Assembly (NCBI GenBank): GCA_047495785.1
Contig: JBLDXI010000029.1
Location: 2,294,001-2,358,000, forward strand
Direction: 5' to 3'
DNA length: 64,000 nucleotides
Source: Lepidodermella squamata
Taxonomy: Eukaryota > Animalia > Gastrotricha
Made by a program: the position numbers and the translations under genes
In this document: positions 7,038-53,222 of the stretch, one piece after another
How the letters are laid out: every line of letters starts with the position of its first letter
Numbering within the stretch: position 1 is the first letter of the stretch
Notes under the pieces: model-generated
The model's database searches: none
What the model was told of the DNA's origin: nothing
What the model saw: the letters and a program-made list of their open reading frames with translations, nothing else

Positions 7038-7204
7038 AATCTCACGACTTGTGAACTTTAACGTCTGCACCAAACAATAAAGCACGATGACATCTGAATG
7101 CCGGGGCTATTAACACGCTTCAACCGTCAACAGGCAAACAGCCCGGGGCTAGCCCAATTTTGAAAACGAAATCTTTTATCATAAGCTAATTATTTATTTT
7201 GACA

Positions 7205-8785: not shown

Positions 8786-9096
8786 TAATAAAGTACGTAA
8801 AGAGCTTAGTAAACGCTATGGGACGGTGGAATAATTTAGCGAACACGAAAAAACAGTCATCGCGTCGCGCTGAAATTACTGTTTAGCTCTGGCCAGTGTA
8901 TCAATATTTTACTTCAATGGACCATTCGGACTTGTGCCGTGCACTGTGTTTGTTGTGAAAGAATAGGCCGTAAAACCGCTGACCTGGAACGAGTGAAGTC
9001 CCAACTTGTGCTTTGTCCCGCGGCTCGTGTTATAAACAATAACACCGTGCAAACACAGTTCCGCGTATTTAATCTTTTTCAGGATTAAGTAAGAAG

Positions 9097-20716: not shown

Positions 20717-23700
20717 CTATTCAATCTCCCATTTCGGTGTTTCCGGACCTTGGAAGGTGTCTGAAAAAATTGAAAAATTGAAATTAATTAAATATCTCAA
20801 ATCAAATAAATGTCGAACTTACTTGGCAAACACCAGCCTAATAAAACATATCGCGAACTCTTCTTAATCATTAACTGCCATGTTAACACAGGGAAGGGTT
20901 GCTTCAGGACAACAGGCGATGGCTAGGGGGGGAAAATTGATAACAATTCGAAAATTAAAAATTTCGAAAATAATTACCTCGAAATTGATGAAGACGAAGC
21001 TGGGCAGTTTCAGGTAGAAATCGAATTTGAAGAACATGTCGTCGTTGCCGTGATACAGATAGAAACAGCCCGATGGTACCGACATTTGCGTGTCCAGGTA
21101 ATAATTCAGGTACAGCGTCGCCAATGAACCGAGACCGAAGAACTAAAAAAATTGGAAAAATTAAACAAATCGAAGAATTTTAATTTTAGGCTTTAAAATA
21201 AAGTTCATGCCATTTTTGAATTTCATATCTAATTAATGTTCAATTTAGATTTAGATTTTTTAAATTTCAAATTTCAAATTCAATTAAATTTAAAAGAATT
21301 TATAATTAAATTCAAGGCAAATTTGGAATAAATTATTCTAAGACTTACGTCATTTTCCAGTTCCGCATAAGCATCGGCTTCGACGATAGTAATCGGCCTG
21401 AATCGAATTCCCATGGCGCCATCGGGACCACAGAACGACGGCCACAGGGTCAAATTGAAGCGAATATCAAAATCAGCATTCATCAGAAAGGCGAATCCGC
21501 CGAAGTTCACACGAAACGCCGGCGTTGTGTACTGCCAACCGTACGTCCAATCATTGATAGTCAAATTACACGCGTATTGAACCTCGTGGAGGTAGACGTT
21601 GGACAAAGCTCGGAGTAACACGTGGCCCTGGAACCCCTTCTGAGTCTGCTCGCGCAGAAATTGAACGACAGCGATTTCCATTTGAACAATCAAGCGAACA
21701 CCCATCCAGGCGCGGCCGAATAGCTTCGACTCGCCACGGTCGTTGCGTCCGGCGAAGAAGCCAGCCTTCAACCCACCGCTGAGTAGCGTGGCTTTGAATT
21801 CGGCCCGGAATAAACAGTGCCGCTTCTGCGCACTGAAATGATTCGCGTCATTGTCGAATTCGATGGGATTTTCGTAGATTTCCGTGTAATTAACCCCGAC
21901 GACACTGTTCCAATTATCGCAGTCGACCTCAGGCGTGAAAACGAACCCGGATAACCCGCCGGCTAGACCGCCACCCAACCCGGCTAGCGGGTTAGCCCCC
22001 GCCGCCATATCGTCACGCCTTTTCCGGACCAAGCCATGCGTGAAGGCTAGAGAGGTCGCGTTCAACTGCGGGGCCGGTTCTTCCAGCTCAGTCTCGTCGA
22101 TGCCATTCCCGCGTTCCTGGAGATAAGTCAACAGGTAGCTATACCACTCCCTTCCCTTTTTCTTAACCAGGTACCGCGCGATCGGTTGCTTGTTACACGC
22201 GAACGCCCCGGTGAAACCCGGCGCCTCCAGCCATTCGGTTAGGATGAAGCCGTCGACCTCTGGCACGGTGCCAAATCGCGGCCACTGCCTCGCCGCGCCG
22301 CCCTTCGACCCCGCCAGTTCAACGGCGACAACCAGCGCATCGACGAGGCCGCCTCGCATCGAACACGGCGTGTCGGGCGCGCGCAACGCCTCGGCCACAG
22401 CCGAACGCACCGACGCGGAACCGAGGCAATTACGCAGCGAATTCAACGCCTCAACCGACAACTCGCTGGTCCGGCAATTTTTCACGATTTTCGTCAAAAT
22501 CTCCAGTAGCTTCACCGCCGGTCCGCCGAGTTGTTCGACTCGTTCCAGGTTCAAAAAATTCGCGATCGACTCGAGGAAGATTTTGTAGACGTCCTTCGAA
22601 GCCGGGCACGTGACTAGAGGCTCAATCATGTGTTGAAACCACTCAATCACTCGAATTTTCGTCTCATTCGAAATCTGGTCGGTGTCTTTTGAAATTAAAC
22701 TGCTAATAGCGAGCGATAAATGGTGTTCGGTTATCGACATCGAGTCGCTGGACGGCAGCATAGCCAGCATGGCGCTGACCAGCCGGTCGGTCGGGTATTC
22801 CAGCTGAATCATGATGTTGAGAAATTGCGGCCGGAAGCTCGATTCCATCAAATCGGTGTCGTTCAGTAAATTCGCGAATAAATTGTCGATTTCAAAGCCG
22901 TAACCGCTTGATAAGATGTAGAGCATTTTCAGGGTGACATCCCACTGCTGGGACGCGGCGCTGTCGTGCAGTTTCGCGGTTACTAAAGGCAAGATTTTTC
23001 GGAGTAGCGGCTGGTCTTGCCGCTTTTCGGATAGAATGTGCATTTTCGATTCGAGGCCGATTATGCTGCGGAGCAGGTTGGCTTCTTTCATGGCGGTGTG
23101 AGGCGAAAGAGCTACGGCGTCGACCAGGCCGGGAATGCCACCGTCCCGTTTCGCGATTTGGTCCAACTTCTTGGTCAGGATTTTCGATATCAAATCGGCT
23201 GGAACAGAAAAAAAATCAATCAAATTTATACTGAGATCAAGAAAATAAATCCGAAGGTCAACATTCAATTACGAGGAATTTTTGGAAATTTCTGGAGCCC
23301 CAGCCTAATGACTAAGGAAGAGTAAATTTTCAGATATTTCAACAATTTTTCAAGACTCGAAAATTTCTTGTTCGATCTCGAAATTTTCAATTTTTGCTTC
23401 TAAAATTTCAGATATCGGAAAAATCACTAAGATTTTAGATATCGGAAAAATCACTGATTTGTACAATCGATATCGGAAATCAATAATTTCGGAAATTCGC
23501 TCAAAATCAAAATTTGCCGGACGTTCTATTCTCCATTTCTAATGGATTTTTGAGAATACTTACAATTGTCGTACTCCTGGCTGGTAAAGTTGACACTGCT
23601 CAATCTGGCATACTCCTTGCTGACCTCCACCACTTCCTTATCGGTACCAACAGGTGTCGGCTCCGAAGTCATCGCCAAGGTGTAAGTGACTTCAACGCTG

Positions 23701-25055
23701 AATGGCAAATTTCGCGTTGTCGACTGCTTTTCCATATCAGGTGACGCCTAAAATTAACAATTCAATACTAAAAAAATTTCAAGAGAATCCTCTCACCTCA
23801 ATCGGGTAAGTCGCGACTCGCCCGCTGACAGCCTCCATTAGCCAATTCGTCGACCGAACACGTTGGTACTGGTTGACGAAAATTTCCAGCTTTTCAGCAT
23901 TCAAAGAGTCGAGTTGCAGGCGGATAAAATCGTCGGGCGTCACGGTTTTGTGGATGATCAGCGAATCGCTGTTCGGCGCGTTCTTGTAAGCGTACTCCGA
24001 GTGGTGAGTACCGAGATCGTCCGTCTCCACTACGGTACCAGCCAAACGATCGCGACTCGTTTGAAACAGCAAAACTATCGACTTCTTCAAATTCGATATT
24101 TCAGACTTCGAATCTATAAAATTGTCAACAAAAAATTAAATCGAAGTTTTAAAAATTCAAAAATTAAATTTCTAATTTTTTTTAAATTAACTTTAATTTA
24201 ATTTAAAAATTCCAGGTCAATAAAATTCATAAAAAATCAATTTTCTAAAATTTGAATGAAATTAAATATAAAAAATTCTAAAAAAAACGAAAAAAATAAA
24301 AATTTACCATGGTCCTGTTTTTTGATGAAAATTTCATGCACAGTTCCATTGAGATACTGCGCAAATTTGACAGGCCATGACGGCATTTCGTACCAGATGT
24401 TGTCCTTGGCAGCGGCGCCCGGGTGCCGATGTTCGGTCGTATCAACAACCTGTATCACCGGCGTGTTGGTTGTTGTCGTCGTCGTTGTGGAGACAGTCAC
24501 CGATTCGGCGACAATTTTCTCCTCGGACGACGTGGCCTGAAAGCCACGCGGCATTTTCTTCTTCCGCTTTGTCGCTTTCTCACTGCCCTCGCCAGTTTTC
24601 CTAGAATTTAAATTGCCATAAAAATCAGCAAATTTCTGGGCAAAATCACGAACTTATTTGACTCCTTGATTTTCGTGGCTATCCTCGAAAACGAAATCGT
24701 GTAATAAGAAATTCCGGTATCGGCGTCTAATAAATTCAATAAATTTTGAAAATTGATCCAAAATTCTGGACTTACCGAACCGATCGCAGGTGAGTTTAAA
24801 ATGCGCGGTGAAATGCATAGACTTGGTAATATTCGTGAAGCCGCCTATCACACTGTTGTAAGAATACTCTGTGGCTAGGTGCTATTGGAAACAAGTCTTG
24901 AATTTATTTTGAAAAATTGACCGAATTGTTACCTTGTCATTGCATACGGTTTGTTGATGTAACCGTAGCTGGGAGTCGAGCTTGGTCGGTAAAGCCGCGA
25001 CGATGGCCGGCGATAAAATAAATAAAACAAGGCTAACAAGCCGGTTGATTGTCAT
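20717..25055 (-). CDS. Secreted vitellogenin/large lipid transfer protein-like protein, paralog A
   Basis: Signal peptide MTINRLVSLVLFILSPAIVAA. LKKSIVLLFQ...ETDDLGTHHSEY resembles the Vitellogenin_N motif NIKRGI.SL.Q...E.D..G.C...Y. Helical middle region, RKRR site, C-terminal GCFYLYHGNDDM. Last exon ends PKWEIE*. Confidence 0.75.
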
Positions 25056-25653
25056 CTGCTGGCTGCCGAAAGCGATCGGGGTCGTAAATTGATTAATAAA
25101 TCGCGAGGTACAAAATAACAAGGTTAAAAAAACTGTTGTCGTGTTGTTATCGCCTGGTATCTTGCTGTTCTACTGCATAATGTGTATGTTGTATCAGTGT
25201 TGATGTTTCAAAATGGTTACAAATTCATTCATTTCAGCGTGTGTGTAAAAGCTTGAAACGCGGTTACGTAAGCTGCTAGCGCACTTGACTGGCACGCGCG
25301 CACTCGGTCGTGTCCAAGAGCGCCGCACGCGCCCTCTCAAAGCGAACATTTTCGCCCCCTTAACGCGAACATTTTTCAGTGTGCTCCACTAATCTGACTT
25401 GTTGAACATGAGAAATGCTAACGCTGCCGAACAGGATTAAGCCCGATTAAGGCGGCGGATGCAACCTGGTACCAACCGTTAACCCGGTATGCTATAAAAA
25501 CCAAAATGTCTCTGCCCCACATTTTTTCGAAAAATCACACAATTTAAATTATTTTAGGTGGATTTTTTTAAATTTCAAGGCGCAATATTTTTTACTTTAT
25601 TTTCATAGTAAATTTCATTCAATACCAATATGATTTTTTTTACAATATTTACA

Positions 25654-28600
25654 TCAATCGAATTCGTCATCGTCCATGCCATTTCCAACATTCCAACCCG
25701 GCGTATCGGGCTTTGCACTTGTGCCTGAAGAAATATTTACTAAATTTACTAAAAAAAGCTTTCGAAAATCTTACTCGGGAAGCAGAATCCGTAAATAACA
25801 TATCTGGCCGCTTTTTTGAAAACAATTTGCCACGTCACAAGAGCGTACGATTGCTTCAAAACAACAGGGATAGGCTATAGGTCAAAAGTTGGCATAATAA
25901 TGAGGTCAAAAATTGAAATTTGACCTACATCAAAGTTGATGAATGCGAAACTGGGTAATTTCAGGTAGAAATCGAGCTTGAAGTACATGCGATCGTTGCC
26001 ATGGTAGAAGTAGAAACAGCCCGATGGCATGACAGTCATCATATCGACGTAGTAATTGACATACATTGTCGCTAAAACACCAACTCCGAAATACTAAAAA
26101 AAAATAATTAAAATTTGAAAAAAATGAATAAAAATTATGAGCATACATCATTTTCCAACTCGGCATAAGCATCGGCGTTGAAAGCAGCGTACGGCTGAAA
26201 TCGAACGCCCATCGAGCCGTCGGGGCCGCAGAATGACGGCCAAAAGGTCAAGTTGACGCCGACATCGAAATCAGCGTTCATAATGAACGCGAAGCCTGAA
26301 AACACGATGCGAAATGCTGGCAATGTCGTGCCTATGCCGTACTGCCACTCCTCCTTCGTCCGGTTGCACGTGTACTGAATTTCGTTGATGTAATTTGTGT
26401 TGATAACGTCGAGTTTCACCTCGCCGCTGAACGCGCCTTTGAGTTGTTCGCGCGAGAATGAAATTGAGGCGATTTCGATGGCGAGTACCAACTGGGCACC
26501 GAGCCAAGTTTTGCCGTACAGACGGCCGTCACTTGCATTGCTTTGGCCTGAGAAAAATCCGGCTTTGAAACCAGCCGAACCCAATGTTCCGAAAGCGAAC
26601 GATGCACTATAAGAAAAACAGTGGAATATAAAAAATAATGACAATGAAATAAATCAAAATAAATTATTTAATTATTTAAATTAAATTAAAATATCTGAAG
26701 TCTAATAATTTCGCTCAAAAGGGATAACGCCAGATTTTTTGTGTCAAGGCGCTAAATTTTTTACACTGGGACATCAAATTTAGGGATGCATAATTTTTCA
26801 AAAAAATTTCAATTTCAATGTTTTCAACATTTTTGAAAATTTTCATTTTTTTCAAATTGATTCCAGTCCTGAAAATGCGAGGCCCATTTAAAATAAAATG
26901 AATTTTACTTGAATAGGCAGTGTTTTTTCTTCATGCCGAATATCAAGCCATCACGGTCGAATTGAGCAGCCAAGTTGTAGACACCAGGCGCAAAATACCG
27001 GCCAATATCCGAGTCCCATCGCTGGCAGTTCAACTCGGGCGTAAATTTCGGAGTCAACCCCCCAGCCCCGCCACCGCCAGTTAGGGCACTAAGGGCGCCA
27101 AGCTGCCGCTTCACGCGTCTTTGCTGGCGTTGTTCAGGATGTTCAGGGTCCGATTGCAGAAGGTTGCGAAGGCCGAGTTTCAGGTCTGCTTTTGATTTCA
27201 GCTCGAAGAATTCGCGCAATAAACCGGGTTTACACGAAAAATCGCCGCTCAGGTTGTCGTCACCGCCGTCTTTCAAGGTCCGGTTCAACGAGTTCCATAG
27301 ATAGGCGTCAAGTACTGTGAAATTATGCTTAGGCCACGTTCGTCTTGGCTTTATCATACCAGCTGAAAAAGGAAGATATATACATTTAATTGAAATTTTC
27401 AAATATTCCGAAACATATTCCGAAAAAAATCGGCCGGGCACAACTTTCCCAAAAATAAATTTTTTATTACCACGCCTAACCAAGCCACATCTCAGCGTTA
27501 CGTGTATGTTGCGTTATTGATGGGCAGTTTAAGAGTACCTAATACTTCAGTTTGCTGGCCGATATCGATTTCAATTATCGATTTTAGAAATCAGTGATTT
27601 TTCCGATATTAGAGCGTGACCCATACGCTGCGCAACCATTAGGCAATTTCGAACATTTTTCAAGGAAATTGAACTAATTTTTTGAGGTTAAGCCCACCGA
27701 GTTACCCTGGAACCTTTATCCACGGTTTTACCGAAGAAATTAAAAATGTAACTGGGAAAAATTTGAAAATCGTGATGGTAACTGGTTCGGAAATTTTCCG
27801 TTTTTACCTGAATCGAATTTCTTCGGAATTTTTTAATCCCATTCGCAAGAGATAGATAAGGTGTTTGATTACTATTTTTATGGCATTTTAGATTTTTCTA
27901 AGATTTTTCTAAAATTAAATATCCCTGGGTCGTAGCGCGCATTTCATACCAAGAAAGGAATAGTTCGAAATATCAAAAAATCGGGAAACCTAATTTAAGG
28001 AGCAGAAATAAAATAATAGAAATAGAAATAGAATAATAAAATAATAGAGCTCAGCTACTAGTGAATCTATTTCATCCGAGAAATTATAAGGAAATCAGGA
28101 AATTTTCCGAAAAAAATGAAGGGAAAAGTACCATCGCTTTGTCGCAGTCCGGTTTCAGGTAACGAAACCAATTGCTGAAGCAATTCACTCCTGGTATAGC
28201 AGCTGCTTTGCCTCATCACGACCAGCAACCCATTTTGAACCTGATCATCCTCCAAAACATGCCGCAAGGTGAGTAAAGACTCCGTCGCCAACTCCGGGTT
28301 CCAGCCATGGCAAGATCCAACAAGTTTCAGCACCACTCGAATCAGGCGACGTAGCACGTTTTCAGCCCTATTCAACATAGTTGGGACTATCACATTAGCC
28401 GCAGCGTCCAAAACAGCCCGGCGTTGTTCGGCCGGAGCTTGGCAATCGCGAATAAACGGTTCCAACTTAGCGATGAAAATGTTAATAACCACCCGATGAA
28501 CCCGACTGGTCGCAGTTTCTTTCGAAACCAGCAAGCTCAGATCCGTTAAAACGTGCATGTTCATAGCATTGGTCCAAGCTATTGGCCAGCTGTCTGTCCT

Positions 28601-30564
28601 GGTAATCAGGCTGGTCAGTTTCAGTATCAAGCCATCGCTTGGGTACTGGTACTGGGCGATTGCGTTCAGAAAATGCTGCGTGTACTTGTAAGATCTCAAT
28701 AGCTCGCCCGTGCTGAGAATATCTAGAAAAATCTTACCGTAAAAATAGCCAGCTTAATTTTCGAAATTTTGAAACAATAAATCGAAAACTGACCTTGTCA
28801 ATATCGTCGTGTTTACAGCCAGCTGCTAGTTCGAGTAATCGAACTGTGACTTTCCATTTTTTCATTTTCCTCGCCGTTTCAATGTTCTATTTAAGGTTCA
28901 AGGTGATTAAAAAATTGAAAGAGTAATCGAAACTAACCTTTTTCAAAACTGAGAACAATTCCGGTAGTAAATTTATTCGGTCCAATTTTCCAAGTACCAT
29001 GAGTCGCGATTCAAGATTCAGCAAGCTTTTCACTTTCCCAACTGTAAAATTATTGAAATTTTAAAATGACCAAGAAAAGAAGGATTTTTTCTACCATAAT
29101 CTGATGGTTTATCCGGATCATCCCATAGGTTTTTGAAGACCAAGCCCAGAGGTAATTTTCGAACATTTTCCAACTTTTTGTAATAAATTGTGAGCAAATT
29201 TTTGTTGTTGTCGAACTGCTGGCTGGTGTAATTTTCTCGGGTGTATCGAACAAAGTCGGTATCGTTCCAAATTGAACTATCCAGCGACTGAGATTCGCCA
29301 TTATTTTTCATCGAATACGTCACCACAACACCAAGAGGAAGTTGGTCATTCTAGTAAAAAAGATAAATTATTACTAAAATTAAAAAAAAATATGATTACC
29401 TTGGCAACGGGCTGAGTTGATATGTGACCATCTGTTTCAGTCACCCTGCCGTCTTTTTCATCGATAATCAGATTTTGAGTGGCGTACAAATTGATTTGAC
29501 TGAAGTTGATCGTATCAAACTGAAGCTTGACAAAATCCTCCGGGTAAACGCTCTTCGTCACCATTAAATTGCCATTACGATAACTTTCGAAGCTGTGAAC
29601 ATGATTAAAATTCATATAGGATGAGTTGAAATTTTTCGGAAAATTTACTGACGTGTAATGCGAAAAATGCTGGCCGAGATCGTCATCTTCAAAAGTTTCC
29701 GTTTCGAATTCGTGGGAGTCATCAAATATTTCCGCATTTCGATTTATTTGAAATGTAAAGACGATTCCTTTCTTAATGTTCTGATCTTCGCTATGCCGAT
29801 CTAAAAATAATTTCGAGAATAAAAGCTGAAACAAATGATAAAAGATTCAGCTACCATGATCTGATTTGTGGACGAATACATCGGTAATAGTTCCGTTGTA
29901 GTATTGGTAAAATCGAATCGGTTTCCGGGACAAATCGAACCATTTATCCTCATTAGGATCGTGCGGTCTGGAACCTATTGTCTTACTAGTCTGGAATCCA
30001 AAAACAATAATTACTTACTCAATTTTCAATAAGAATGTAAAAAGCTCACAGTTGTAGATCCTATCGCTTTGAACGAATTTACAGGGATTTTCCGATGCCG
30101 AGATTTTGAACTGTTAAATTCGTAAGATTCGGAAATTGAACTTAAAAGGTTCAGTCACCTTACTTTGAAACCGAGGCGTTACTTTTCATTTTTGTAGATA
30201 GGGTTAAAAAATTTATCACAAATTCATATCGACCGATGCTGGGTTCTGAAGAATAGTTGATATTAATAGATTAAAGAAAATATTGAAAATTCCAACCATA
30301 ATTTACACAGGTCAGCTCGAATCGCGAGGTAAAAACGATGTATTTAGTCGCATTGGCGAATCCAACTATTTTGCTATTGTAATCGTATAAAAGTGACGTC
30401 CGATTGAGATCCTGCAAGGAAAAATAATTAGATGTCGATCTATTGTCCCATTTTTTTTCATTTACCTGGCATAGGGCTTGAGAAAAATGAGCCAAAGTTC
30501 TGGCGCCTATTTGATCGATAAGGGTGATCAGTGCCAACACGACTCCCTTTTCCAATAAACCCAT
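25654..30564 (-). CDS. Secreted vitellogenin/LLTP-like protein, paralog B
   Basis: Signal-like MGLLEKGVVLALITLI. NIKKGIVFTFQ...EDDDLGQHFSHY, RVKR site, GCFYFYHGNDRM. Last exon ends DDDEFD*. Confidence 0.75.
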
Positions 30565-32044
30565 CCGTATCAAGATCGAGAAATTATGGGCTATGTATCT
30601 TCACAGGATGTCCCTTTGCTTTGGTGACATTTTTCGGCAAGAACAAAACGGCAGAAAAGTAAACAGATTTTCTGAAAATTAATTAAAATACAAATATTGC
30701 TGTAGTATAAGTTGGAAAACAAGCATTATTAAACAATAGGTTTGATGATGTTCGCAAATTATTAATTTTATTTAGAAAAATGATGAGAACTTTTTGATTA
30801 TACAAGTAAAACCGGCGCGGAATGCCGGAACAAAGGGCTAGCGGTGAATTAAGAGAAGCGACGGCGGCGACGCCAAATTGTCTGCGCACGCGCAAAGCGA
30901 CGCACTTGAATTACCTTGGCAAGTATATAATCGCATTACTTCACTCATCATAATGCGGCAAAATTATGAAAAAATTAATTACCCTGTGATTTATAAGATC
31001 AAAATTATAGATATAAATTTAGCGATGATGCGAATTAATTGATGGCAAAAATCAGGGTGGGGATAGCAAAGAGAATAAAAAGTGAAAATGTGACCTGAAA
31101 TAACTTAAAACTAGGTCATGATAACATTTTATGCATTTTTTCTTGTAACATTTCAAAATTTCATCGGAGATAAACTCATTAATTCTTTTTTTTCAGGGAA
31201 ATTTGAGAGGAATTCTTGGAAAATTAGTTCTGATTTTCTTTTTAAAAAATCATGTGTAAAGTGATTGAACCATTTTGGAGAATTTTGATACCGAAAAATT
31301 TGTAAAAAAAAATCCGCCTTAATTTATTTTGTGTAAATTCCTGTTCCGAAAATCAGAAATAATTTTTGTTGTCACGCTTGATTGATTTTTTCACGCTCTG
31401 CCCTATTGGAACAACTCCAAGACCAAAGGCCTGGAATGAGCCTCAGGCTAAAGAAATTCACGCGCTCAAGGCGGGAGATAAGAGATGCCGGCGCGCGTTA
31501 AAGCATAAAAACTAAAACAATAGCGCATCTCATTTCAGCGACCAAGAGCAGGTATCAGCAAGCGCGCATCCGCGCACTCAAGTTCCAAGGCCGGCAAAAT
31601 AATGATACATGAGGCCCTCGAAACAATAATTACCTGCCGAGAGTGTTGTCTCCACTCTGCGGCTTCAAGTACATGTAAATAATAATAATAATAATAATAA
31701 TGAAAATTTAGCTAAAACCGACGCCAAACGCCTGTTGTGACCTGAACATCCGCTTCGAGTTAATTGCTACCTGGCCTAGCTTTAACGAAGCGCGATGCGA
31801 CCAGTACTAAACGCTTGGTGTCTGCATAGTCGTGTTATCTCTTATCAGCTGGCTTTTGCCTCTCGCGTAAAAATGTAATGTACAAAATACTCCGCCGAAA
31901 CGAGAAAAATTCTGCGACGATTAACAATTTGTTCAACACGACAACAAAAATTTAATTGTCAAACGCCTCATGAGCACACCAGTATTTTGTCATCGCGAAC
32001 AAATTATTTCGGCAAATGTTGTGAAATTTTTATAACAATATAAT

Positions 32045-35000
32045 ATGACGGTGATATTTTTCTTGTTGTTGACAATCTGCCTACCGTTCGTGGCGCCTAT
32101 AAGTCCTTGCAACCCTTACGAGCCTGGTCCGATCAGCCATCAATACATCTTCGACAGCTCAGTAGCGGCTTTTACAAACTCGATCGCTAAATCAATTTTT
32201 TTCACGGCAAATTTTTCGTTACAGTGCGATGAATTCGGTAGGCGGAAATTTTAAATTTTTCTCACTGAAAATTCAATTTTTTTCAATAGATCCGAATAAC
32301 CGATTGTACCAATATTCTTTGATTATTCACAAAATATCGACAAAACTTCAGTCGACGGATAAAAGGAAGAAAACTGCGGCGCCAAGCCGGAGGCGCAAAA
32401 TTCCGGCTCCTTTTAAGGTGGCAGCATCGCTGAACCCAATAACGAATAAGTTCAAAATCGAGAATTATCAAACTCGACACCGGCGGGCTGCTGAACAGGA
32501 AAATGTTTGGTATGACCTGGTGCCACAGCAGAGCAATAACTCGGTCCAAGTTCGATTCGACCGGCTGTTCAACGGCTCGATCATCCGGATGAAAATTCCT
32601 AGCGATTTGAGTGAAGTTACGGTTGGAATTTTGAAAACGCTGGTCCTACTATTCAACATCAACCGAAACATGACGTCGACTTTACTGCTCGAAAACGACG
32701 ATTTGGGCCAGCATTACTCGAAATTTTCATTCCAACGTTACCACAATGGCGATTCGAGGTTTTTAATCGCTGAAAAAATCGTCGAGCCGGATGATTTTAA
32801 CAAAAATCAGTACGAAAGCGTGAATACGGGTAAAATTGCGGTGAAGCAGCGGCAAATTCAGGTGATAAACTACGACACGATGCTGCTGTACAATTCTTCG
32901 GGCAAAATTTCGACAACGTCAGCGACTGATTTTCAGAATTTAAACACCAGCTCGACTGAAGATAAACGAATTCCGAATGTTATCTTCCAAGTTGAAGTTG
33001 GGTATTACTTGAAACTCGACCGAACTCTGCCGAGATTTTACGATAGGGTCCAGAAGAAACCTGAGCAAGTGTTCGATTTTTCCAACTTCGCCCCTCAACA
33101 TTTCGACGATTGTGAGTTTGAAATTTAAAATTTGAGTCCTCCTTAATTTTTTGTTTAATAGCTAAAGAATTGGAGAAGATTTTGCATATCAAGCAGGATT
33201 TATTGAAAACCAACGCGAATTGGCAGGATGTTATGCAAATAGCTGTTGGCGAGGTTCGATCAGGTCAGGATAAGGAATCGAATCTGCTTCGAGGGGCCTT
33301 GGTCCTAGAATCGACCCTCTACTTGAGATCGAAACGTCAAAATAAGCCGATTTTAAACGAAATTCTACCGATTGCCACAAAAATTCTAGTCGAAAGTCTG
33401 GACAGCAACAATTTCGATGCTGTTTTTCGCGTTTTGTACATACTATCCGGAGCTCATGGTGATGAAATTAACAAGGTGACTGGATTTTTTTAGAAAAATC
33501 AATGTTAAGGCGGATTTTTTTAATTTTTTAATTTTTAATTTTAATTTTAATTTTAATTTTAATTTCAAATTTCAAATTTCAAATTTTAATTTCAATTTCA
33601 ATTTTTTTAGATTTTTCTCGGATGTTTTTCCCTGAGATCTATCACTGAAAATGAGGCAAATCGGCGTAATTTTTTCAACACGCTTGGCCAGCTGCAATTC
33701 CCGTCCGATTTGTTACTCAACCGGTTATTTGCCGAGTTCGAACAATTGAGCCTTAAATCTGTCTTCCGAATGACTGATAAAGAAGCGAATGCGACGCGGC
33801 GGTGTTACCACGCTATGCTCAGCGCGGGTACTTTGCTGTCCCGGCAAACCATTTCCGACCAAATGCGGGATAGAATAATCCGATGGTTCACGAACAAAAT
33901 CACTCAGACCTTCACAGCTCACCATCGCTGCCGCGGTCTTCACGACGCTAAATTTTACTACGAACCAATTTTCGACTCAATCGCAAATTTCATGACGCCA
34001 GAAGTTGTGGGTAAGCATCCGCAACTCGTCAATTCATCCCTGGTTTGGCATTTGCTAGAGATCGCGGAGATTTGCTACGACCGCGTTGAGCCGGAATTTG
34101 CGCTGACAGTTCTACAAACCCTGCGAAAATTGTACCACTTCGCGCCAATTTCTGAGTCGATTTCGCATTTGATTGCCGTAAAATCAACGTCCTGCGAACA
34201 GCGGGCTGATTTGTTGAATGAGCTTCGAAATAGGATCAACGACGATGATCGAATGCGGCTGCAGCGAATGTGGCCGCGTTATGGCGTAGTCACCGTGCTG
34301 GATTCCTACGTTACCCAGCAGTTTTTGTCGATTTTAGACGGGAAAGGCAGTTCGTTCGATTGTAACAGGGGTGTTTTGGTTGACTATTTGAAGGGGAAGC
34401 GAGGTCGAGCTTGGGATGAGTTATTCGAAGGCATCGCCGAGAAGCACTATAGGAGGAGGAATTTTCGAGACAATTCAACAGCTGAAAATGAGGCCTTAAT
34501 CCGAAATCGGCGGCAGCTCGGAGGTTTAGGAAGCCTTCTCGGTGGTGGAGGAGGTCTTACTGGAGGTAAGTAAATTCAAAAAATTTAAAATTTATTTAAA
34601 ATTTAAAATGTAGAGAATTTAAAGAATTTAATTCAATTTTTTTAAATTTTAAAATTTGATTCAACATTTTAGATGTTGAGAATTTTGTAATTAATTTTAT
34701 TTAGCAGATTTAAAAATTCAAAATTTAATTGTAAAGCGAAAGCAAAAATTTGAAAGCAAAAAATTTCAAACACAATTTTTTCATGTCAGGCGGCGGCGGT
34801 GGAGGAGGAAGCGGTTTCACCCCGAATACGATAGTCGAATGTGACAAGTGGGACTCGACCGTGGGAAGAAATTACCGTAACGTCTATTCGAATCCTACGC
34901 TATACGATTACGACAGCTTGACTTACGGATCTACGAAACGCCATTGTATTTTCGATTTGTCAATCAAATTTTCCACCCTCGCTACGATCGGCATCGAAGC

Positions 35001-35953
35001 TGGGTTCTTCTCCGGTAGAAATGCTACAACGCGTATGGGCCGATTATTCGGCAAAGCCTGGTCAGGGTGAGTCAACATTTCAATTTCAAAATTGTTTGGA
35101 TTTATTTTGAAATTTTTGAAATAGGTTGTCGTTTTTACTTTCTCCCCAAGAATTTGCCGTGCTCGAATTTAGCCGTTACATGCATCCACGTGGCTTCAAT
35201 GGCGGCGTGAAGCTGTCAGCTTTTGGCACAGTTTACATGGATGAAAAACAAGATCACTGTAACATGACCTTCCGCATCAGTTTCCGGCCGTTGCAATGGA
35301 CCCTGCCAGCTTTTCGAGTTACCTTCGGCGGGTTCACGTTTTTAATGACTGCTGATTTCGCCCTCACTTTGAACATGACCCTGAACCCTTCTTACTGTGG
35401 GGCTGATGGCGAGATGGGTCTTCGATTCTTACCCGCTGTTGTAGCCGAGGCAACAGCATATGCCGAACTTGAAAATGACGTAAATTTTCGCCAAAAAATA
35501 ATCATTCCCTCGAAAATAATAATTTTTCCGCTCAAGTTTTTTGGCATGGGAATGCAGGCAGCTGTAAACATCAACTACTACTTCGACTTTCAAGCCTCAG
35601 TACCCAGCGGATGTCTGTACATTTTCCACGGAAATGATGACATGTTCATGAAATTCGACTTCTACATAAAATTGCCGAGTTTCGTCTTCACGAACACAAA
35701 CGTAATTTTTACGAGATTTTTACCTATCTATGTCTATATTTTTCCTGATTATAGGTCAAATCGATAACAATACGGCAACCATGGCCAATATTTACGTGGC
35801 AATTAATTATTAAAAAGTCTGGCCGATATGTCTTATATGGATTCTGCATGCCTGGTAAGTTCATTTAACGCTTTGGAAGGTTTTTTTTAATTATATTTTG
35901 AAATCACAGCAACTGTCATCCCACCCGAAGCCGTTCCTTACTACAACACCTGA
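32045..35953 (+). CDS. Secreted vitellogenin/LLTP-like protein, paralog C
   Basis: Signal peptide MTVIFFLLLTICLPFVA. GILKTLVLLFN...ENDDLGQHYSKF, RNRR site, GCLYIFHGNDDM. About nine exons, ending VPYYNT*. Confidence 0.75.
33522..33606. repeat. (TTTTAA/TTTCAA)n hexamer microsatellite in an intron
   Basis: Visible tandem hexamers. Confidence 0.8.
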
Positions 35954-36263
35954 AAATTATGCAGTTTTTAAATTTCAGATAAATAATTTGAGAATAAAAA
36001 GAAGAAATGTTGCTACAACAATGTTTTACTCGAATAATTCAAAGAACTGAAAAGTAAGAGATAGCAGGTAAAGTATTTAAGCTGTAACAGGGCTCATTTT
36101 GATCAATAAAATTTTATACAAAAAAAATAAAAAGCACTACAACAGTAATTTTCTATATACAATATTTTACAAAACGGCCAGAAAAAAGTCTTTAGAAAAA
36201 TCACAGAAAGCAATTTCAGCTTTTATGGAACAATGTTATAGCCTGAATCTCGAAAAATCTCGT

Positions 36264-39200
36264 TTAGCCTTGGCTCGCATCGAATGTCCAGGATGGAGTA
36301 TCGGGACCGGAGAAAAAGTCTGCAAAATTTTTCAAAAATTTAAATAAAATTCAGTTTTTTCTGCCAAAATATTTACTTGGCGGGCACCAGCCGAACAGCG
36401 CCCATTTGCCGCCCGCTTTTGCAATCAAATCCCATTGAAATACGTTCCACACAATCAGTGAGGTTGCTGGATTAGGCTATTTAAAAAAATTGATAAAAAA
36501 TTATCATTTTTTTTAAATAAATTCGCTCACATTGATGTTTGTAAATTTGAATGTTGGCAATTTAAGGTAGATTGAAATCGAAAATTGCATGTCGTCATTG
36601 CCGTGGTAGAGCCGAATGCAGCCGTCGGGCGCTCGTAGTGACAACTCGAGGAAATAATCGAAAAATAACTGCGCATTTATGCCGACTCCGAAGTAAGAAT
36701 TCGCGATTTCCGCAAACGCATTGCCAGCCAAAACACCGACAGGTTTGAACATAATGCCGATGTCGCCTTGTAAACAATAGCTAGGCCATAAGTACAGGGT
36801 TACTCGAGCTTCGAGATCTGCGTTCATGTTGAGGGAAAAGCCGCCGAATGAGACGGTGTACACTGGCAGGGCGAATTGGTAGGCGTAGGACCATTGATCG
36901 ATTGTAATATTGCACGTGTATTGAGGCAAGTCCCTAAAAAATAGAACAGAAATATGTGAAAATTACGTTAAAAATAAAATAAAATAAAATAAAATTGAGG
37001 TTCCAGCTCTGAGTTCAAGCTCCAAGCTCCAAGTTTTTTGCGATTACGAATTTTCCCAATATCAAAAATTCCACCATTTTCCCCGATTTCGGGTCTCGAT
37101 CGGAAAATTGAGAATTATTTCAAAATTTTCAATTATTTGGTTTCGGTTTAGGGAACGAAGAGATATGAGGTGGGGTAAGGTCTTCAAAAATTAAAATGTT
37201 AATTTCTGAATTTTAAATAATTTTGAATTCAATAATTAATTTCGATTTTCATATATCGATATCGAAAATTGATGGAAATCGATACTCAAAATCGATATCG
37301 ACTGTTCTGGTAGATTTTTAGCCAATGTCAACAATTTTCTGTAGATCCCATACTTTTGGAGTTTGGCCTAGTTTCAATCAGCCCAAATTATCTAGATCTT
37401 TAGTCCAATTTATAGACCGAACTTACATGTAAGTGAAACCAATAGCCGATAGACGCGTGTAACCATAGAAACCGCTTTGACTCTGCTCACGATTGAACGC
37501 AACATCCAACAAGCTGATAACAAGCCCAAGTTGAACATTGACAACCAGCCGGCCGAACAGCTTGCAAATACCCGTCTCAGCAGTTTTACCCGTGAAAAAC
37601 CCGGCTCGAACATAGGCCGCAAAATAATTCGTCCCGCCAGTTACATCAAACAAAATATGCCGCCGGACGTTGTACAACGATTTATCAGTTTGAAATTGAG
37701 ACGGCGCTTGAATAACGACAAACATGCCGTTGTAGTCTTGCCAGTCGTTCGTGTAAATATTGTACGAATAGCCGTCACCACTCGCCCGTTTTTCCCGGTC
37801 CAATAGCTCGGTAGAATTGCTAGTATCAATCGTAATCACCTTATCGTCCTCCGAATTTGAAATCGCCAATTTTTTCGTGGTAATCGTAACCGGGGTTGTT
37901 CGAACCATTCCGAAGCTTCGTTGAAATTGAACCGAACCATATGGCATTTTCTTCCTCGCGAAGTAATCTTCAAAGGTCGCGCGGTCACAGGACAATTTTT
38001 CAGGCTGGAACATGAGTAGAGCCGCGAAGTGGCGGTCGATTTCATTCACGCCCCTCGCCGGCCAAACCTTGATGTCAAACTGCATTGTTTTCATCAACTG
38101 GCCGATCAGCAGCGATTTTTGGTGGCAATCAGCCCGGGTTAGATAGGCTAGGATCGATTTCATAGCTATAGGCGATGTATGCAGCTTACTAACCGCGGCC
38201 AGGGCTGTTAGGGCGATGTCGTCGATTTCATGACACATTTTCGCGATATCAATGACTTGGTTGATCAATTTCGAGGCTAATGGCCCGATTTGGTTGACAA
38301 CCTGCGGGCTCAGGAAGTTGCCCATAGCACTTAGACTCAGCATAGCTGGGGTTCCGAGTTGGCAGGTTTCGTTTGCGAATCTATCGCTGACGACTTTGTA
38401 GAGATATTCGGCGACTGTGATTTTTGTTTGGTTGGTTACGGTGTTGCGGGAGCCGGTTGAGCCGATGGCGAGTAGCAGGTGGTTTCGGAATTCGAGTTCG
38501 TCATCGTCGAACACTTCGCCGGCTCGGTGTTGGTAGATCATTTGCGTGACTATGAAATCGGATGGGTGGGACATGAAAATTGCCATATTCATCAGTTGCA
38601 CTCGGTACATGTTCGGCAGCTGGTCGTTTTGAAGATAGCTGAGGAGAACCTATGAAAATTTAAAAATAAATGTTTTATTTGACTAAAGGTTGATAGGGAT
38701 AGATTCCAAAATTTAAAAAAAATTCTTAGAATTTTCATTTGTTTGTTATCCTGTCTAATCGCGCTGAACCTTTAGTTCACACGATCAATATCGATTCCAA
38801 GTATCGATTTTACAAATCAGTGATTTTTTCGATATTAGCAATCTTTGAAACCAACATTGAAACTGTTCCTAGCGAGCTGATGGTACTAGGTACCAGGTAG
38901 CTAAATGGAAAACCCCAAGGTCATGGAAGGCATCAGTAATGACCAATATAAGAAGAAGCTGAAATCGCAAGGAATGGGGACCTTACCTTTTGTGGTTCGA
39001 ATCTTCAGATATAACGTGAATTGCCAAAAACTCTACATTTCTAAAAGACTTCAATTTCCAGATATTTAAGCTGGCATGAAAAAAGGTTCCATGGCTTCGA
39101 CGAAGTTCCATGAAAATTTTACAGAAATTCATAGGAAAAGTGGAAATTTGGCCCCACTGAAAAATTGTATTAAAAACTGGACCTTTAGCAGATTTATGAA

Positions 39201-41072
39201 TTCATTCCTTTATCAATCCTTTAAATTTTAAATTTTTAGCCCACCTTATCGGCATAATGGCCAGATGCTGAAACGGCAAGGTTCAGGAAAGACAGACAAA
39301 GAGACCAGCTCTGCATTGACTCGCACTTGATCAATTGCTGCAAAAATTAAGGTGGAAATTTTCACCTCAAGTTTTACAAGAAACCAACTTTTTTAATCGC
39401 AGGCATCGCCATATCGTAAACCTTTCTCGCCTTCATTTTACCAGCGTGATATAGCTCAGCTTCCAGCTGTAAGGCTCGCCGTAAAGGTTTCACTGGGAAA
39501 ATTAATCGAAAATTAATAAAATTCCAAATTTTCAAGGTCAAATTTACGAATGTCTTGATTTTGAGGCGATTCGCTGAATTCATCCAGAATCGTCTCAATG
39601 CCCTTGCCGTACAAGGCCGGTTCAACTTTCGCGAAAACCTCGGCAATATGGGCTGTTGGGTCGTCGTTACTGCTCAAAACTTCAGCCGGTTTCTCCGCAC
39701 TCTCCCAATCCATACCAGTCACACTTCGCAACATATGAAGCACAGCGGGTAAATTACCGGCTAATCGGGTTGTTAGTGCTAAATTGAACCGAGCTTCAAC
39801 CGCAACTTGAGCTTTCACGTCCTCATCAACGGAGTACACCTGGGTAGGGTGCGTCGTAGTCGCGAGCTCTACGCTGATATTTCCCGAATATTGGCGCAGA
39901 TTTCCGTCGTTCGAAAAATTTTGCCGTTCAGTGACGAGGACATTCAACATGCCAGCGTTGACCTCATCGCGTTGCATTTGGATGAAATCGTCGCTAGTCA
40001 GGCGTTTCGTGACTATTAGACCACCGGCGATTGGCGTGTCGTATTTGTAGGTGGTGTAATGATAGCCGAGTTCGTCGTATTCGGCTACGGATCGCAGCGT
40101 GGTGAATGTTGCGTCTGTTTCCACGGGATAGGCGGTTTGGAAGGCGAAAACAATGGCTCGTTTTATGCTGACCAGCTTGCTTTGCTCTAAAAAATGAAAA
40201 GATGGAATTAAATAAAAAATCACAAAAAATATACCGTAACTTTGAGAAAATCAAATTGTTTTAAGTTAAAATTCATCCAATCAACTTGAGACGGAGGCAT
40301 AAAAATATGCATAAAAATTCCATTTTTCTGGTGTTCAACCCCGAGGAGTCGATATCCTTAGATGTTCAAGGTTACCCTATCCCTTAGAAGCCTCGATGTC
40401 GAGGGCGAATCAAAACTGTGCAAATCTTGCGGTCAGAAAATCTAATTCTAAAACGCTATAGAATTTGTTTAGCTAAATTCGACCATTTATTCTGTGTTTA
40501 TTCACCTGCGGTAGCATCCATTTTGTTGAAAGTGATGGTAGAAATTGAGCCGTTGTTCAGCCGATCGAACATGACCGGGCCTTTCGGCAGCGGGAACCAG
40601 TGGCCAATCGTAGAATTCGCATCCTCATCCATTTTATACGTATCATCAACCGCCATTTTCAGCGATTCCTTCGTCGGATTCTCAGGATCCTCCGCACGCA
40701 CCATATTCGGCGGCAACTTCCGCCGCCGCGTCTGTTGCGTTGGTTTACGCACATAGTCTGATATACTGGTTTCGAGGCTGTCAAACCACAGGGCGTAACG
40801 TGTTTTCGTGGGCGAGGATGAGTCGATGCCGCGGCAGAGCAGGTACACCTGGGCTCGGTAGTTGATCACCTTCGACGCATTACTCGCTGATATGAGACTG
40901 CTTTGAAAGCTATATTTTAGCGCCTCCTTAATAAAAAATTATATTGAAAGTAGGAAGTGAATTTGTTGGCCTGGCTGACCTTTGAGCAGGCATTTTGAAC
41001 GATGGTTTTCGACGAAACGTAAGAAAACAGGGTACAGACAGCGACAATACACGGCAGAGTGTGGTGTATCAT
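36264..41072 (-). CDS. Secreted vitellogenin/LLTP-like protein, paralog D (most divergent)
   Basis: Signal-like MIHHTLPCIVAVCTLFSYVSS. SIKRAIVFAFQ...EYDELGYHYTTY, REKR site, GCIRLYHGNDDM. Last exon ends FDASQG*. Confidence 0.75.
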
Positions 41073-46088: not shown

Positions 46089-48487
46089 TCATTTTTTCGC
46101 CTGCTTATGGTTGTCTTTGCGCGACTGAAAGAACGACACAGTTCGCAGGGCTTGTGATTGCGGGGCGATTCGCACGACGGTCTCGGCGCCCATCGAAAAG
46201 GTGTACTGGATACCACCGTCGATGACCAAACCACCATCCTGCATTCGACTTCGAATTCGCAGCTTTTGACAATAACCACGGGGTGCAGTTAACTTGAAAA
46301 CTTCTGCAAAAAAAAATAAAAATTCCACCTTAAATTTCAGCTTAATTGTGAAATGTGAGAAAATCTAGCTTAACATAAATTTTTATCGTTTATAAAATAA
46401 TCGTTTTTAATAAAAAATAAAAAACTCCACCTTAACTCTTTCATCAGCAGAATTATGAAAAAAATCCAGCTTAATAATTTTTAATTTTAATTTAAAATTA
46501 CCGTTAGTAATAGGGTCCCGGGAAGCGTAAGCCATGCGTTTGTCCTCTGGGTGAAAAATGAGCGCCGAGTTATAGGATTCAACAACGCGATTGACGAATT
46601 TTTGATCGGAAACAGGCAGCTGACCGCCTTGCCTCGTGTCTGCCGCAATTTCGTTCGCAAGTTGCAGCAGCGACTTGACGGTATCCGGATGCAGTGTTGT
46701 AATCGTGTGGTACCACGATGTAGAACCTGTTCCGGTTGATACGGTCAAGCCTGAGGATTTTTGCTTGAAGGACGGCTGGTCATCAATGGTCACTTCATAA
46801 TACGAGGCGCTGAAAACAAAAAAAATTATTGCATAATATATTTATGGGGAATTTTGAATAATTTACAGGGCATTGCTGTTTTCGCCGATGAAAACTTCGT
46901 TGAGCGCTAATGAGGGTAGAACGACGAATCCGGGCAGCTCGGGGTCAGGAGGTAGAGTCGAGACGGGGTATTCGAAAGACGGCCGGCCGTGGACGTGCAA
47001 ATCAGTCACGGTTACTGTTTCGCAGGCCGCAAGGGAAACTTCAATCCGCTGGCGATTCAGCCAGCGAAAATGGCCACTCTGGAGGCGATCGTAAACCTCC
47101 TAAAAATAGAAAAAAAGTTTAATCCGAAGCCCATCAGAGATAAAATACCTAAACAACATTAAATATCAAACAAGTTTTACATGTTCATAATCCAGCTTAA
47201 AACGAGAACCTTAAACTTTGCAGGTGAATAGCTTTGGGAAGGCGAATGATTAAAACAAAGGTTTCATCGCAAACGAAATTATCCGTCTTACAAGCTCTTC
47301 AAATTCGTAAAGCTTGAGGTAATTAAAGGGAAAACCAACTCTTTGAAAAAGCTCATTATCTGTGCAATATGACTGAAAGACTCCCCTCATCTCTACCTAA
47401 TCAAGGAATAAATTTTGATGAAATTTGGCGTGGGCATACCTGAAGCGTTGCTCGCTCCGTGATCGAAAGATAAAACAAAATCGGACGACTGGTTTAAGCA
47501 AGGAATCCACCTGAAATTCAGGTGCAAAATTGGGTAATTTTTAGAAAAAAATGCTGCTAAGAATAATTTTCAAATTTCTCAAACTCTTCTCAAAATTTGA
47601 CCCAAGATTAAATAACAAAATTCAAAATTATTTAAGCTATAAGCTTTATAAGAAAATGAGAGACCAAAATTAACCGCTAACCTTCATGCAAGAATGATCT
47701 AAATCGACCAAAATCAGGAAAAATTCGTAAAATTTTCCATAGCATAGATTGATCAGAAACAATCAACCCCATAATATTCAAGCTATTTTCCGAGTTGAAA
47801 TTGATTTTCAATTTTCGAACAACCTTGATCCTTTCAATGTTACCTAGCGCCCCAAGTTACAATACACCTCGAAAATCTTCAAGAAAATAAGTTTCTCACC
47901 TCGATATCCATATTAGGAAGACAGAGATGGCCTTGAGATCGCGTAGGGTCGGTATTAAAACCGATGACGGGAATTGAGTTATCTTTAACCCAACCAGCTG
48001 CTTGCAGGAAGGTGCCGTCGCCGCCCGCTGTCAACACGGCATCGACGTGTTTGAGCTTTTCGTGGTCGAAATCAGACCGATTGGTCACCTGCACATTTAC
48101 GCCACGCTTCTGGAAAAAACCGACCAGCCGATCCAGCTCCTTGTGATGCATTTTGTGGTGTTCCAGCAGTTTATTGTAATCACTGCCGAGGAAATTGACG
48201 TAGTTCTCGAAATCCTTCTCGCTCTGGCGATTCGACAGCATCTTTTCGAACTCGTAACGAGTCCGCTTATTGAATAGGACGACATTTTTGAACCGCAGCG
48301 GTTCGTTGATCGGGCGGTCGATTAGCGAGCGTTGTTGGCACGCATCCTTAGCAGCGGGTCCGTTCGCTGACGACCATGGTCGTAGGATGTGGTAGAAATT
48401 CTTAGCTGACCGCTTGATTCCGCAAGCAGTAACCAGCTTGGAGAGAATAATCTTTCGGTAGTTAGTCGAGGCGCAGTTGACAATCAT
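46089..48487 (-). CDS. NADK2: Mitochondrial NAD kinase 2
   Basis: KRTRYEFE, AGGDGTFL, GFNTDPTRSQGHLCL, ALNEVFIGE, KQKSSGLTVSTGTGSTSW, GLVIDGG. Four exons. Confidence 0.94.
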
Positions 48488-48899
48488 TGGATAAGACGTT
48501 ATCAACTCGTTTATCCCTTTTTCTTCGGCATTTTCAGCAAAACAATGTCAAAAGTTGTAGAATGGACGATTACAGCACCAGAGATTCACTATTATTAATA
48601 CTAATAAGCATAAATGTGCTTCAAAAGCGCCCTATATCAACGAGAAAAACAGCCTGTAAACACCGTGATACGACGACGAGATGCAAAAAACACGAGCGTT
48701 TCCGAGTACTACGCAGCGGCGTTTTTTTCTGCAGCGGACACACCGCCGCCACTAATAAATGAGAAGTACGCTGGGTCCGGGCCAGGAGAAGAACATGAAT
48801 GCACTCTGGATTCCGACTTCTAATTGCGATATCTGAAAAGAGAGAAGAAATTATTAGCCTCGCCAACATGAATTTTCGAAGCAAAAAAATAAGAATGAA

Positions 48900-52011: not shown

Positions 52012-53064
52012 ATGAACGCGTTTCTTTCTAGCAACGTCCGTTCCTTGATTCAATCCGCTCGATTAGTCTCGATGGCTTCTTCAGCAAAGAGTTACAATGT
52101 CCTTGTTACGGCCGCTGGAATTCCCAAACCTGCCATCGAATTTTTGAAGGCAAAGAATTGTACCATTGACCAATGGCATCTGGAAACTGTGATGCCAACT
52201 GATGAGGTGAAAAAGCGCATCAAAGACGTTGATGCCGTTTATTGCACTCTCAACGATCAGATTTCCCGAGATGTTATTAGCGCAGCCAGTGATAAACTAA
52301 AGGTCATTTGCACCATGTCGGTAGGAGCTGATCATGTGGATAAGGCTGCTCTCAAGGAGCGGGGAATTCGGTTTGGATACACGCCCGATGTAGTTACTAA
52401 CGCTTCGGCAGAACTGATAACCTGTTTGATCCTGACTACGATGCGGAAAACCTTTCAAGGCGCACTGGCTGTGAGAAATGGCGAGTGGCCCGATGGATGG
52501 CGGCCTTTGTGGATGTGCGGTGACACGATCTGCGAATCAACACTTGGTTTTGTTGGATTTGGCCGAATTGGACAAGCTCTCGCTGCCCGACTGAAAGCAT
52601 TCAGCCCTGCTAAAATTCTTTATCATTGTCAAAATCGGAAGGCCAACCTTGAATCTGAGTTGGGTGTTACCTGGTGCGACAACTTGGACGGAATAATGCA
52701 ACAGTCTGACGTCGTGATTGTTTGCTGCGCTTTGGACGATTCAACTCGCCATTTAATGTCGAGGAGAACACTTGGTCTAATGAGAAAGGGCTCGTACTTT
52801 ATTAATGCAAGTCGCGGTGGGGTTGTGGACCAAGATGCTTTGATTGAACTGCTGCGGCAAGGTCACTTTGCAGGCGTAGGGCTTGATGTCACGACTCCTG
52901 AACCTTTACCCGCTTCTAGCGAATTGCTTAAATTTCCCGAATGTACTGTTTTCCCCCACATGGCTTCATCCTGCATTAAAACGCGTGAAAGAATGGCTGA
53001 CTTGGTTGTTCGAAACATTTGGGCCGCTTTGCAGGGCGAGCCCATGCCTGCCGAATGGAAATAA
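52012..53064 (+). CDS. GRHPR: Glyoxylate/hydroxypyruvate reductase (D-2-hydroxyacid dehydrogenase), copy 1, intronless
   Basis: TMSVGADHVD, GYTPDVVT, W.PLWMCG, GFGRIG, FINASRGGVVDQ, GLDVTTPEPL, PH catalytic motif. Confidence 0.93.
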   Translation: MNAFLSSNVRSLIQSARLVSMASSAKSYNVLVTAAGIPKPAIEFLKAKNCTIDQWHLETVMPTDEVKKRIKDVDAVYCTLNDQISRDVISAASDKLKVICTMSVGADHVDKAALKERGIRFGYTPDVVTNASAELITCLILTTMRKTFQGALAVRNGEWPDGWRPLWMCGDTICESTLGFVGFGRIGQALAARLKAFSPAKILYHCQNRKANLESELGVTWCDNLDGIMQQSDVVIVCCALDDSTRHLMSRRTLGLMRKGSYFINASRGGVVDQDALIELLRQGHFAGVGLDVTTPEPLPASSELLKFPECTVFPHMASSCIKTRERMADLVVRNIWAALQGEPMPAEWK

Positions 53065-53222
53065 CATTATAACGGTGCTCTACTTACATGACACTGAAAA
53101 CTACCGCTGCTTCCTTGTTGCATATTTATGATGATATATCACCTGCCATTTGCTTGCTATTATACCTACCAAAGAGCTATTTTTCTTCAATTCCGTTGAT
53201 GTTTTATAGGTTTTATTTGAAC

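Follow-up and report, generated by a model that had tools for sequence, protein, structure and literature searches.

We found that four related genes (g1–g4), clustered in a 64,000-nucleotide stretch of the genome of the gastrotrich Lepidodermella squamata (contig JBLDXI010000029.1, positions 2,294,001–2,358,000, forward strand; hereafter the window), represent a real branch of the large lipid transfer proteins (LLTPs), with an architecture and sequence markers of its own inside a well-known superfamily. LLTPs distribute lipid through the animal body and supply it to eggs; three families are generally recognised in the superfamily. The products of g1–g4 are probably secreted core lipid-transfer modules of the size of MTP, which a furin-type protease would cut into two fragments. 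Full-text literature searches, with the accessions of relatives included, returned no paper on this protein family.

All-versus-all BLASTP of the open frames between 19 and 43 kb of the window yielded four colinear sets of related coding exons, on the minus, minus, plus and minus strands, respectively:

20717–25055, minus strand: g1, with a signal-like start at 25055 and the stop codon at 20717–20719 (ends read by hand)
25654–30564, minus strand: g2, LLTP-like paralog with more exons than g1 (BLASTP and hand reading)
32045–35953, plus strand: g3, LLTP-like paralog; exon 1 at 32045–32237, exon 2 at 32290–33111 (N-terminal barrel), exon 3 from 33162
36264–41072, minus strand: g4, LLTP-like paralog with its ATG at 41072 (hand reading)

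With the gene ends checked by hand, the number of paralogs, their orientation and their outer limits are exactly those claimed in a preliminary description of this DNA. The protein lengths given there, about 1,000–1,100 aa, are approximate, being estimates for which not every small internal exon was delimited. Introns included, the genes span 3.9–4.9 kb; the introns are AT-rich with GT..AG borders and 50–205 nt long in the six measured by hand. Over its full length, g4 is colinear with residues 2–888 of P0002, an 888-aa metagenomic homologue encoded in one open frame and 50–73% identical to the main exons of g4, and no part is missing. Across the 121-Mb assembly, six-frame searching with the family profile and with P0002 recovered g1–g4 and no further copies.

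All four proteins carry the barrel motif N-(L/I)-K-K-x-I-V...Q-T ... E-x-D-(D/E)-L-G-x-H, a furin-type site and, in the β-rich part, the C-terminal signature C..(Y/F)HGND.M..F....Y(L/I)KLP.F.F.N, followed by a tail exon:

24004–24027, minus strand: barrel His motif of g1, ETDDLGTH
29667–29690, minus strand: barrel His motif of g2, EDDDLGQH
32691–32714, plus strand: barrel His motif of g3, ENDDLGQH
40059–40082, minus strand: barrel His motif of g4, EYDELGYH
22015–22026, minus strand: furin-type site of g1, RKRR, between the helical domain and the C-terminal β domain
27106–27117, minus strand: furin-type site of g2, RVKR
34502–34513, plus strand: furin-type site of g3, RNRR
37786–37797, minus strand: furin-type site of g4, REKR
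21035–21052, minus strand: HGNDDM signature of g1, in the last β sheet
25986–26003, minus strand: HGNDRM signature of g2
35627–35644, plus strand: HGND(D/R)M signature of g3
36588–36605, minus strand: HGND(D/R)M signature of g4
20800–20922, minus strand: open frame with the tail exon of g1, P.PVVLKQ..TWQ..KK..RYVLLGWCLP
25752–25874, minus strand: open frame with the tail exon of g2
within about 35757–35848, plus strand: tail exon equivalent of g3
36354–36476, minus strand: open frame with the tail exon of g4

The C-terminal domain ends about 270 aa after the helical domain. Its tail closes on YG(F/W)C.P or G(W/F)C.P and is followed by a last mini-exon, which in g1, g2 and g4 holds P(D/E)TP.W. 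All four paralogs have a C-N-x-T sequon in this domain, and none of them ends in a KDEL-like sequence. The preliminary description had pointed out both the HGND.M / G(W/F)C.P signature and a His in place of the Cys of an E.D..G.C-type motif; each is found in four of four genes.

Relatives were collected with a profile (A2) built from the g1 616-aa exon and the matching exons of g2–g4. Among 1.84 billion representative sequences it matched 37 proteins, the closest of which were metagenomic; the matches included XP_013398086 of the brachiopod Lingula anatina (P0008, E 2.9e-27) and XP_054724407 of the spider Uloborus (P0010, E 7.1e-23). All named matches are protostome proteins labelled 'uncharacterized'. 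Lophotrochozoan members come from Lingula, where at least seven genes (XP_013398086 and at least six more) include several on one 456-kb scaffold, from the chiton Liolophura, a mollusc (XP_064601306), and from the annelid Owenia (CAH1801120). Chelicerate members come from the spiders Uloborus, Araneus, Larinioides (CAL1281905) and Trichonephila, from Centruroides scorpions, from the horseshoe crabs Limulus (XP_022241763) and Tachypleus, and from the mite Dinothrombium (RWS14528), while Priapulus contributes a priapulid member (XP_014672388).

These relatives share the architecture of g1–g4, the invariant His motif, the RxxR site and the HG.D.M signature, and differ from them in having only about 20–25% sequence identity. 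Full-length relatives measure 882–1,049 aa. Aligned with one another (alignment A5), eight full-length members that represent five phyla have invariant E, G, H and Y in the barrel motif, and they also share an invariant R-x-(K/R)-R, present in g1–g4 as well, together with an invariant WP and several Cys. The C-terminal signature is kept as C..x(H/N)G.(D/N).(M/N) in Lingula, spiders, a mite and a chiton. As side observations, the Priapulus protein (P0028, 1,631 aa) ends in a chitin-binding peritrophin-A / CBM_14 domain, and one Lingula gene model (P0044, 1,031 aa) also contains an ASC sodium-channel domain, probably owing to a fusion in the gene model.

The ESM Atlas gave no usable match for the g1 616-aa exon or the g3 273-aa barrel exon, and the word-indexed protein search returned only close metagenomic homologues, such as P0001 with 71% identity to the large g1 exon, or Lingula paralogs; its profile query A4 missed even the Lingula proteins, and its blank hence means little. 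A spliced-RNA exon-junction search of metagenome contigs gave no match and was uninformative. Across the databases, relatives are labelled only 'uncharacterized' or 'Vitellogenin domain-containing'. The proposal of an unnamed LLTP-derived branch, made in the preliminary description, is supported: we found no described family that holds g1–g4, and an LLTP fold is predicted (see below). It needs two corrections, as the branch extends beyond this genome to several protostome phyla, and some members already bear the automatic label 'Vitellogenin domain-containing'.

Homology to LLTPs was reached through profile A2 as an intermediate. P0008, P0010, P0045 from Lingula, P0047 from Larinioides and P0065 from Liolophura passed the gathering score of Pfam family PF01347 (Vitellogenin_N; cut-off 24 bits), at 53, 44, 62, 34 and 27 bits. 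What matches in them is the barrel motif or the helical domain, and PF01347 was matched by 6 of the 31 members of alignment A4. Comparing the family profile with a canonical LLTP of the same genome by hhalign gave a weak E of 0.0075, with the alignment located at the expected barrel motif, where N-F-K-R-x-I...Q-T...V-x-E....G-K-H paired with N-L-K-K-G-L...L-Q...V-A-E-P-S-P-I-G-T-C. Judged from this alignment, the family His takes the place of the canonical LLTP Cys (G-x-H versus G-T-C), as the preliminary description had it.

AlphaFold2 models were made for the g1 616-aa exon with the paralog alignment, and for P0002 with 31 sequences. The g1 exon model contains a confident helical solenoid (predicted local distance difference test, pLDDT, 80–95), a disordered loop around RKRR and β sheets of modest confidence. 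The P0002 model (pLDDT 71.8; predicted template modelling score, pTM, 0.61) has strands at residues 47–213, helices at 253–605, a disordered loop with the RxxR site at 608–636 and sheets at 638–887. In both models the RxxR site lies in a low-confidence loop, and the predicted secondary structure agrees with the helical middle and β-rich C-terminus of the preliminary description. The P0002 model hence shows the three-part large lipid transfer (LLT) module, i.e., an N-terminal β-barrel, an α-helical solenoid and cavity-closing β sheets, and the g1 exon model shows the solenoid and the sheets.

A Foldseek search of the PDB with the P0002 model gave nine best matches that were all LLTPs, comprising MTP, apoB100, honey-bee vitellogenin and lipovitellin (MTP 6i7s, E 6.6e-14 over 924 columns; apoB 9bd1, E 3.8e-11; MTP 8eoj, E 1e-10; bee vitellogenin, E 2.8e-10; lipovitellin 1lsh, E 7.9e-10), and the first unrelated chain followed at E 6.5e-5. 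The LLTP fold implied in the preliminary description is thus predicted for this g4 homologue. For the g1 exon model, apoB100, MTP and bee vitellogenin were among the five best matches. VIA-align was applied to the P0002 model twice, once as a re-examination and once for an independent search covering 48,161 chains. The model aligned to 6i7s_G with Z 12.8 over 555 residues (model 53–873 to chain 121–845), to 1lsh with Z 12.6 over 491 residues and to 9bd1 with Z 13.4 over 425 residues. An alignment over all three domains, from barrel to sheet, was obtained with LLTPs only.

Several results weigh against assigning the cluster to the LLTPs as secreted carriers. The preliminary description had suggested a direct PF01347 scan, which found no match at E≤1 in the eight largest window exons, g1–g4 being searched exon by exon; in the six-frame search of the genome, PF01347 matched at other loci only. 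The LLTP link of the window genes is therefore transitive and structural. P0002 had no PF01347 match either, and phmmer searches with the Lingula and spider members P0008 and P0010 matched no LLTP in the PDB. VIA-align results for both models were dominated by armadillo/HEAT solenoids, from which Z alone cannot separate LLTPs, as generic solenoids also reach a Z of about 13. Global TM-scores were about 0.3 with root-mean-square deviations of 16–21 Å, hence the relative placement of the domains in the P0002 model is not to be trusted. Moreover, this full-length model represents a homologue from another species and not a window gene, and its last 130 residues have pLDDT 55–60. Finally, the hydrophobic, signal-like N-termini of g1–g4 (MTINRLVSLVLFILSPAIVAA, MGLLEKGVVLALITLIDQIGA, MTVIFFLLLTICLPFVAP and MIHHTLPCIVAVCTLFSYVSS, respectively), like those of the Lingula and spider relatives, were judged by eye.

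The genome contains other LLTP genes, which bear on what g1–g4 might be instead. The six-frame PF01347 search found canonical Vitellogenin_N genes on the window's own contig (C29:365–380 kb, two genes), at C3:4.198 Mb and at C15:2.88 Mb. The two on C29 (364945–380758) are oppositely oriented, with about 10 kb between them, and are some 1.9 Mb from the cluster. A 551-codon open frame at C7:468027–471440 matches PF19444 (MTP_lip_bd) just above the cut-off, with the only PF19444 match in the genome at C7:469.5 kb, and human MTP with E 4e-5; PF01347 gave no match on contig C7 in the six-frame search. From its sequence, this frame is a candidate for a very divergent MTP large subunit. Since its canonical LLTP genes and its MTP candidate are located at other sites, the genome contains g1–g4 as an additional, distinct branch.

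It is distinctly unlikely that g1–g4 are divergent MTP paralogs, i.e., factors of the endoplasmic reticulum (ER) lumen that load lipid onto other lipoproteins rather than circulate as carriers. The large subunit of MTP (6i7s, 8eoj) also consists of the LLT module alone in about 900–1,000 aa, has the same three-domain layout without a vWD domain, and is the best Foldseek match of the P0002 model and the sole one whose alignment reaches the C-terminal end. But no family member matches MTP_lip_bd, sequence similarity to MTP is not detectable, phmmer found no human MTP match at E≤1 for the Lingula and spider members, and the family profile did not align significantly with the genome's own C7 candidate (hhalign, E 0.09), which itself matches human MTP and PF19444. 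A KDEL-like end is lacking in g1–g4, although MTP itself depends on PDI to be retained in the ER. The invariant furin-type site of the family would point to passage through the trans-Golgi and onward, and the C-terminal signature (C..HG.D.M, G(W/F)C.P) is the family's own. Yolk or storage proteins, acting as short vitellogenin substitutes taken up by oocytes, would fit the LLTP fold and a multi-copy tandem arrangement, which is common for yolk genes, and convertase cleavage is typical of insect vitellogenins. Family members match Vitellogenin_N, vitellogenin and lipovitellin (1lsh, 9ens, 9enr) are found by Foldseek at E 3e-10 to 1e-9, and the barrel motif N-x-K-(K/R)-x-I...Q-T...E....G-x-(C/H)...Y aligns with the canonical LLTP of the genome. 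However, we think it unlikely that g1–g4 serve as yolk: canonical Vitellogenin_N genes exist at C29:365–380 kb, on C3 and on C15, and the family proteins are at most half as long as vitellogenins, lack a polyserine tract and have an invariant His for the motif Cys. In Pfam scans, window exons and full-length relatives contained no VWD, open-beta-sheet or DUF1944 domain; among vitellogenin and MTP domains only PF01347 was matched.

A use of the LLT module outside transport, as a pattern-recognition, clotting, adhesive or matrix protein, appears rather improbable to us. Other LLTPs do have such roles, e.g., the crustacean clotting protein and vitellogenin in immunity, and both the chitin-binding domain of the Priapulus relative and the replacement of the barrel Cys by an invariant His would suit it. 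Yet the cavity-forming domains are all retained, and the CBM_14 fusion, known from a single lineage, may be an artefact of the gene model. The family may nevertheless act in immunity, clotting or the matrix. That the cluster is decaying and consists of pseudogenes or chance open frames is hardly credible, because all exons are open, the inspected splice sites are GT..AG, g4 is colinear with P0002 throughout, the motif residues are invariant across phyla, and homologues with 55–73% identity have the same neighbours in a related species.

We hence favor g1–g4 as secreted, convertase-processed lipid-transfer modules. An invariant R-x-(K/R)-R in a disordered loop, the C-N-x-T sequon and the lack of a KDEL-like end together argue for a secretory-pathway protein cut by a convertase. 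Led by its putative signal peptide, the protein would enter the ER, and a furin-type proprotein convertase would cut it late in the secretory pathway at the invariant site between the helical and β-sheet domains, giving fragments of roughly 700 and 300 residues. By analogy, these fragments may stay joined: apolipophorin II/I is cut by furin at RxxR into two chains that remain in one particle, and the convertase fragments of insect vitellogenins stay together as well. Helices and sheets would then enclose a hydrophobic cavity, in which lipid or another hydrophobic ligand could be carried in the body fluid. Insect apolipophorin II/I and vertebrate apoB (9bd1, 9e9r) are secreted LLTPs; the former resembles the family in its RxxR site, and the β/α1 region of the latter is a top structural match of the P0002 model. 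They are different in comprising 3,000–4,500 aa with long amphipathic extensions, whereas the family consists of the module only and has its RxxR site where the helical domain gives way to the last sheets.

Opinion is evenly balanced on whether these proteins form a fourth ancient LLTP family beside MTP, apoB/apolipophorin and vitellogenin. Such a family would be at least as old as the protostome ancestor and comprise MTP-sized, secreted, convertase-cleaved lipid carriers or sensors, recognisable by an invariant His instead of the barrel disulfide Cys and by a sheet signature of their own at the C-terminus. Loss, or divergence beyond recognition, in insects, nematodes and vertebrates would explain why it was overlooked.

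After the cleavage site, g1–g3 contain a Gly-rich segment that is predicted to be disordered. We considered it as a fusion peptide, which is unlikely as a family feature since, besides its predicted disorder, the segment does not occur in g4, P0002 or any distant relative; a lineage-specific linker seems more likely. A second basic, convertase-like site lies in an insertion of the N-terminal barrel and is conserved in g1, g3, g4 and P0002, where it reads SRRRKLPPGM:

32388–32399, plus strand: second basic site of g3, RRRK
24240–24653, minus strand: exon frame with the second basic site of g1, RKKKMPRGF
40501–40869, minus strand: exon frame with the second basic site of g4, RRRKLPPNM

Its position corresponds to R-x-(K/R)-R-G in the spider and mite relatives and in P0019, and the whole insertion with the basic site is missing from the Lingula proteins. 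Going by sequence, it may be a second processing site.

The genes differ in exon structure. One fused 1.85-kb exon of g1 (21349–23198, minus strand) encodes the helical domain together with the greater part of the C-terminal β domain, compared with four to five exons in g2 (26138–28753) and g3 (33162–35479). A phase-1 intron occupies the same position in g1 (exon start 23198) and g3 (exon start 33162), the only position compared, in these two genes. The single g1 exon and the 888-codon single frame of P0002 suggest that introns were lost from particular lineages and copies of a young tandem family.

On the side of g4, the cluster is followed by genes for NAD kinase and two tandem 2-hydroxyacid dehydrogenases:

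47882–48505, minus strand, and 52012–54206, plus strand: the NAD kinase gene and the two tandem 2-hydroxyacid dehydrogenase genes
56346–56990, plus strand: open frame from a neighbouring gene, encoding the last part of a SET methyltransferase domain

P0002 lies on a 25-kb metagenome contig (L010), adjoining a second copy and genes for NAD kinase, COQ7 and 2-hydroxyacid dehydrogenase; the matching neighbours and COQ7 occupy positions 1–5400, beside the two LLTP-like genes. As the same kinds of neighbours occur in the window and on L010, the location is conserved between species. On metagenome contig L001, which carries a g1 homologue, the next gene (6170–8928) encodes a trypsin-SRCR protease, whereas bestrophin genes lie on that side of g1 in the window; the neighbourhood on the g1 side is thus not conserved.

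The His motif, the RxxR site and HG.D.M, as defined by g1–g4 and the relatives from Lingula, spiders and horseshoe crabs, are sequence markers by which the family can be easily annotated. If our reading is correct, a compact, module-only, secreted and convertase-processed branch, multi-copy in several phyla and absent from the classic model organisms, would be a new player in invertebrate lipid transport or innate recognition. It would also offer structural biology the apoB/vitellogenin lipid cavity in a small and tractable form.

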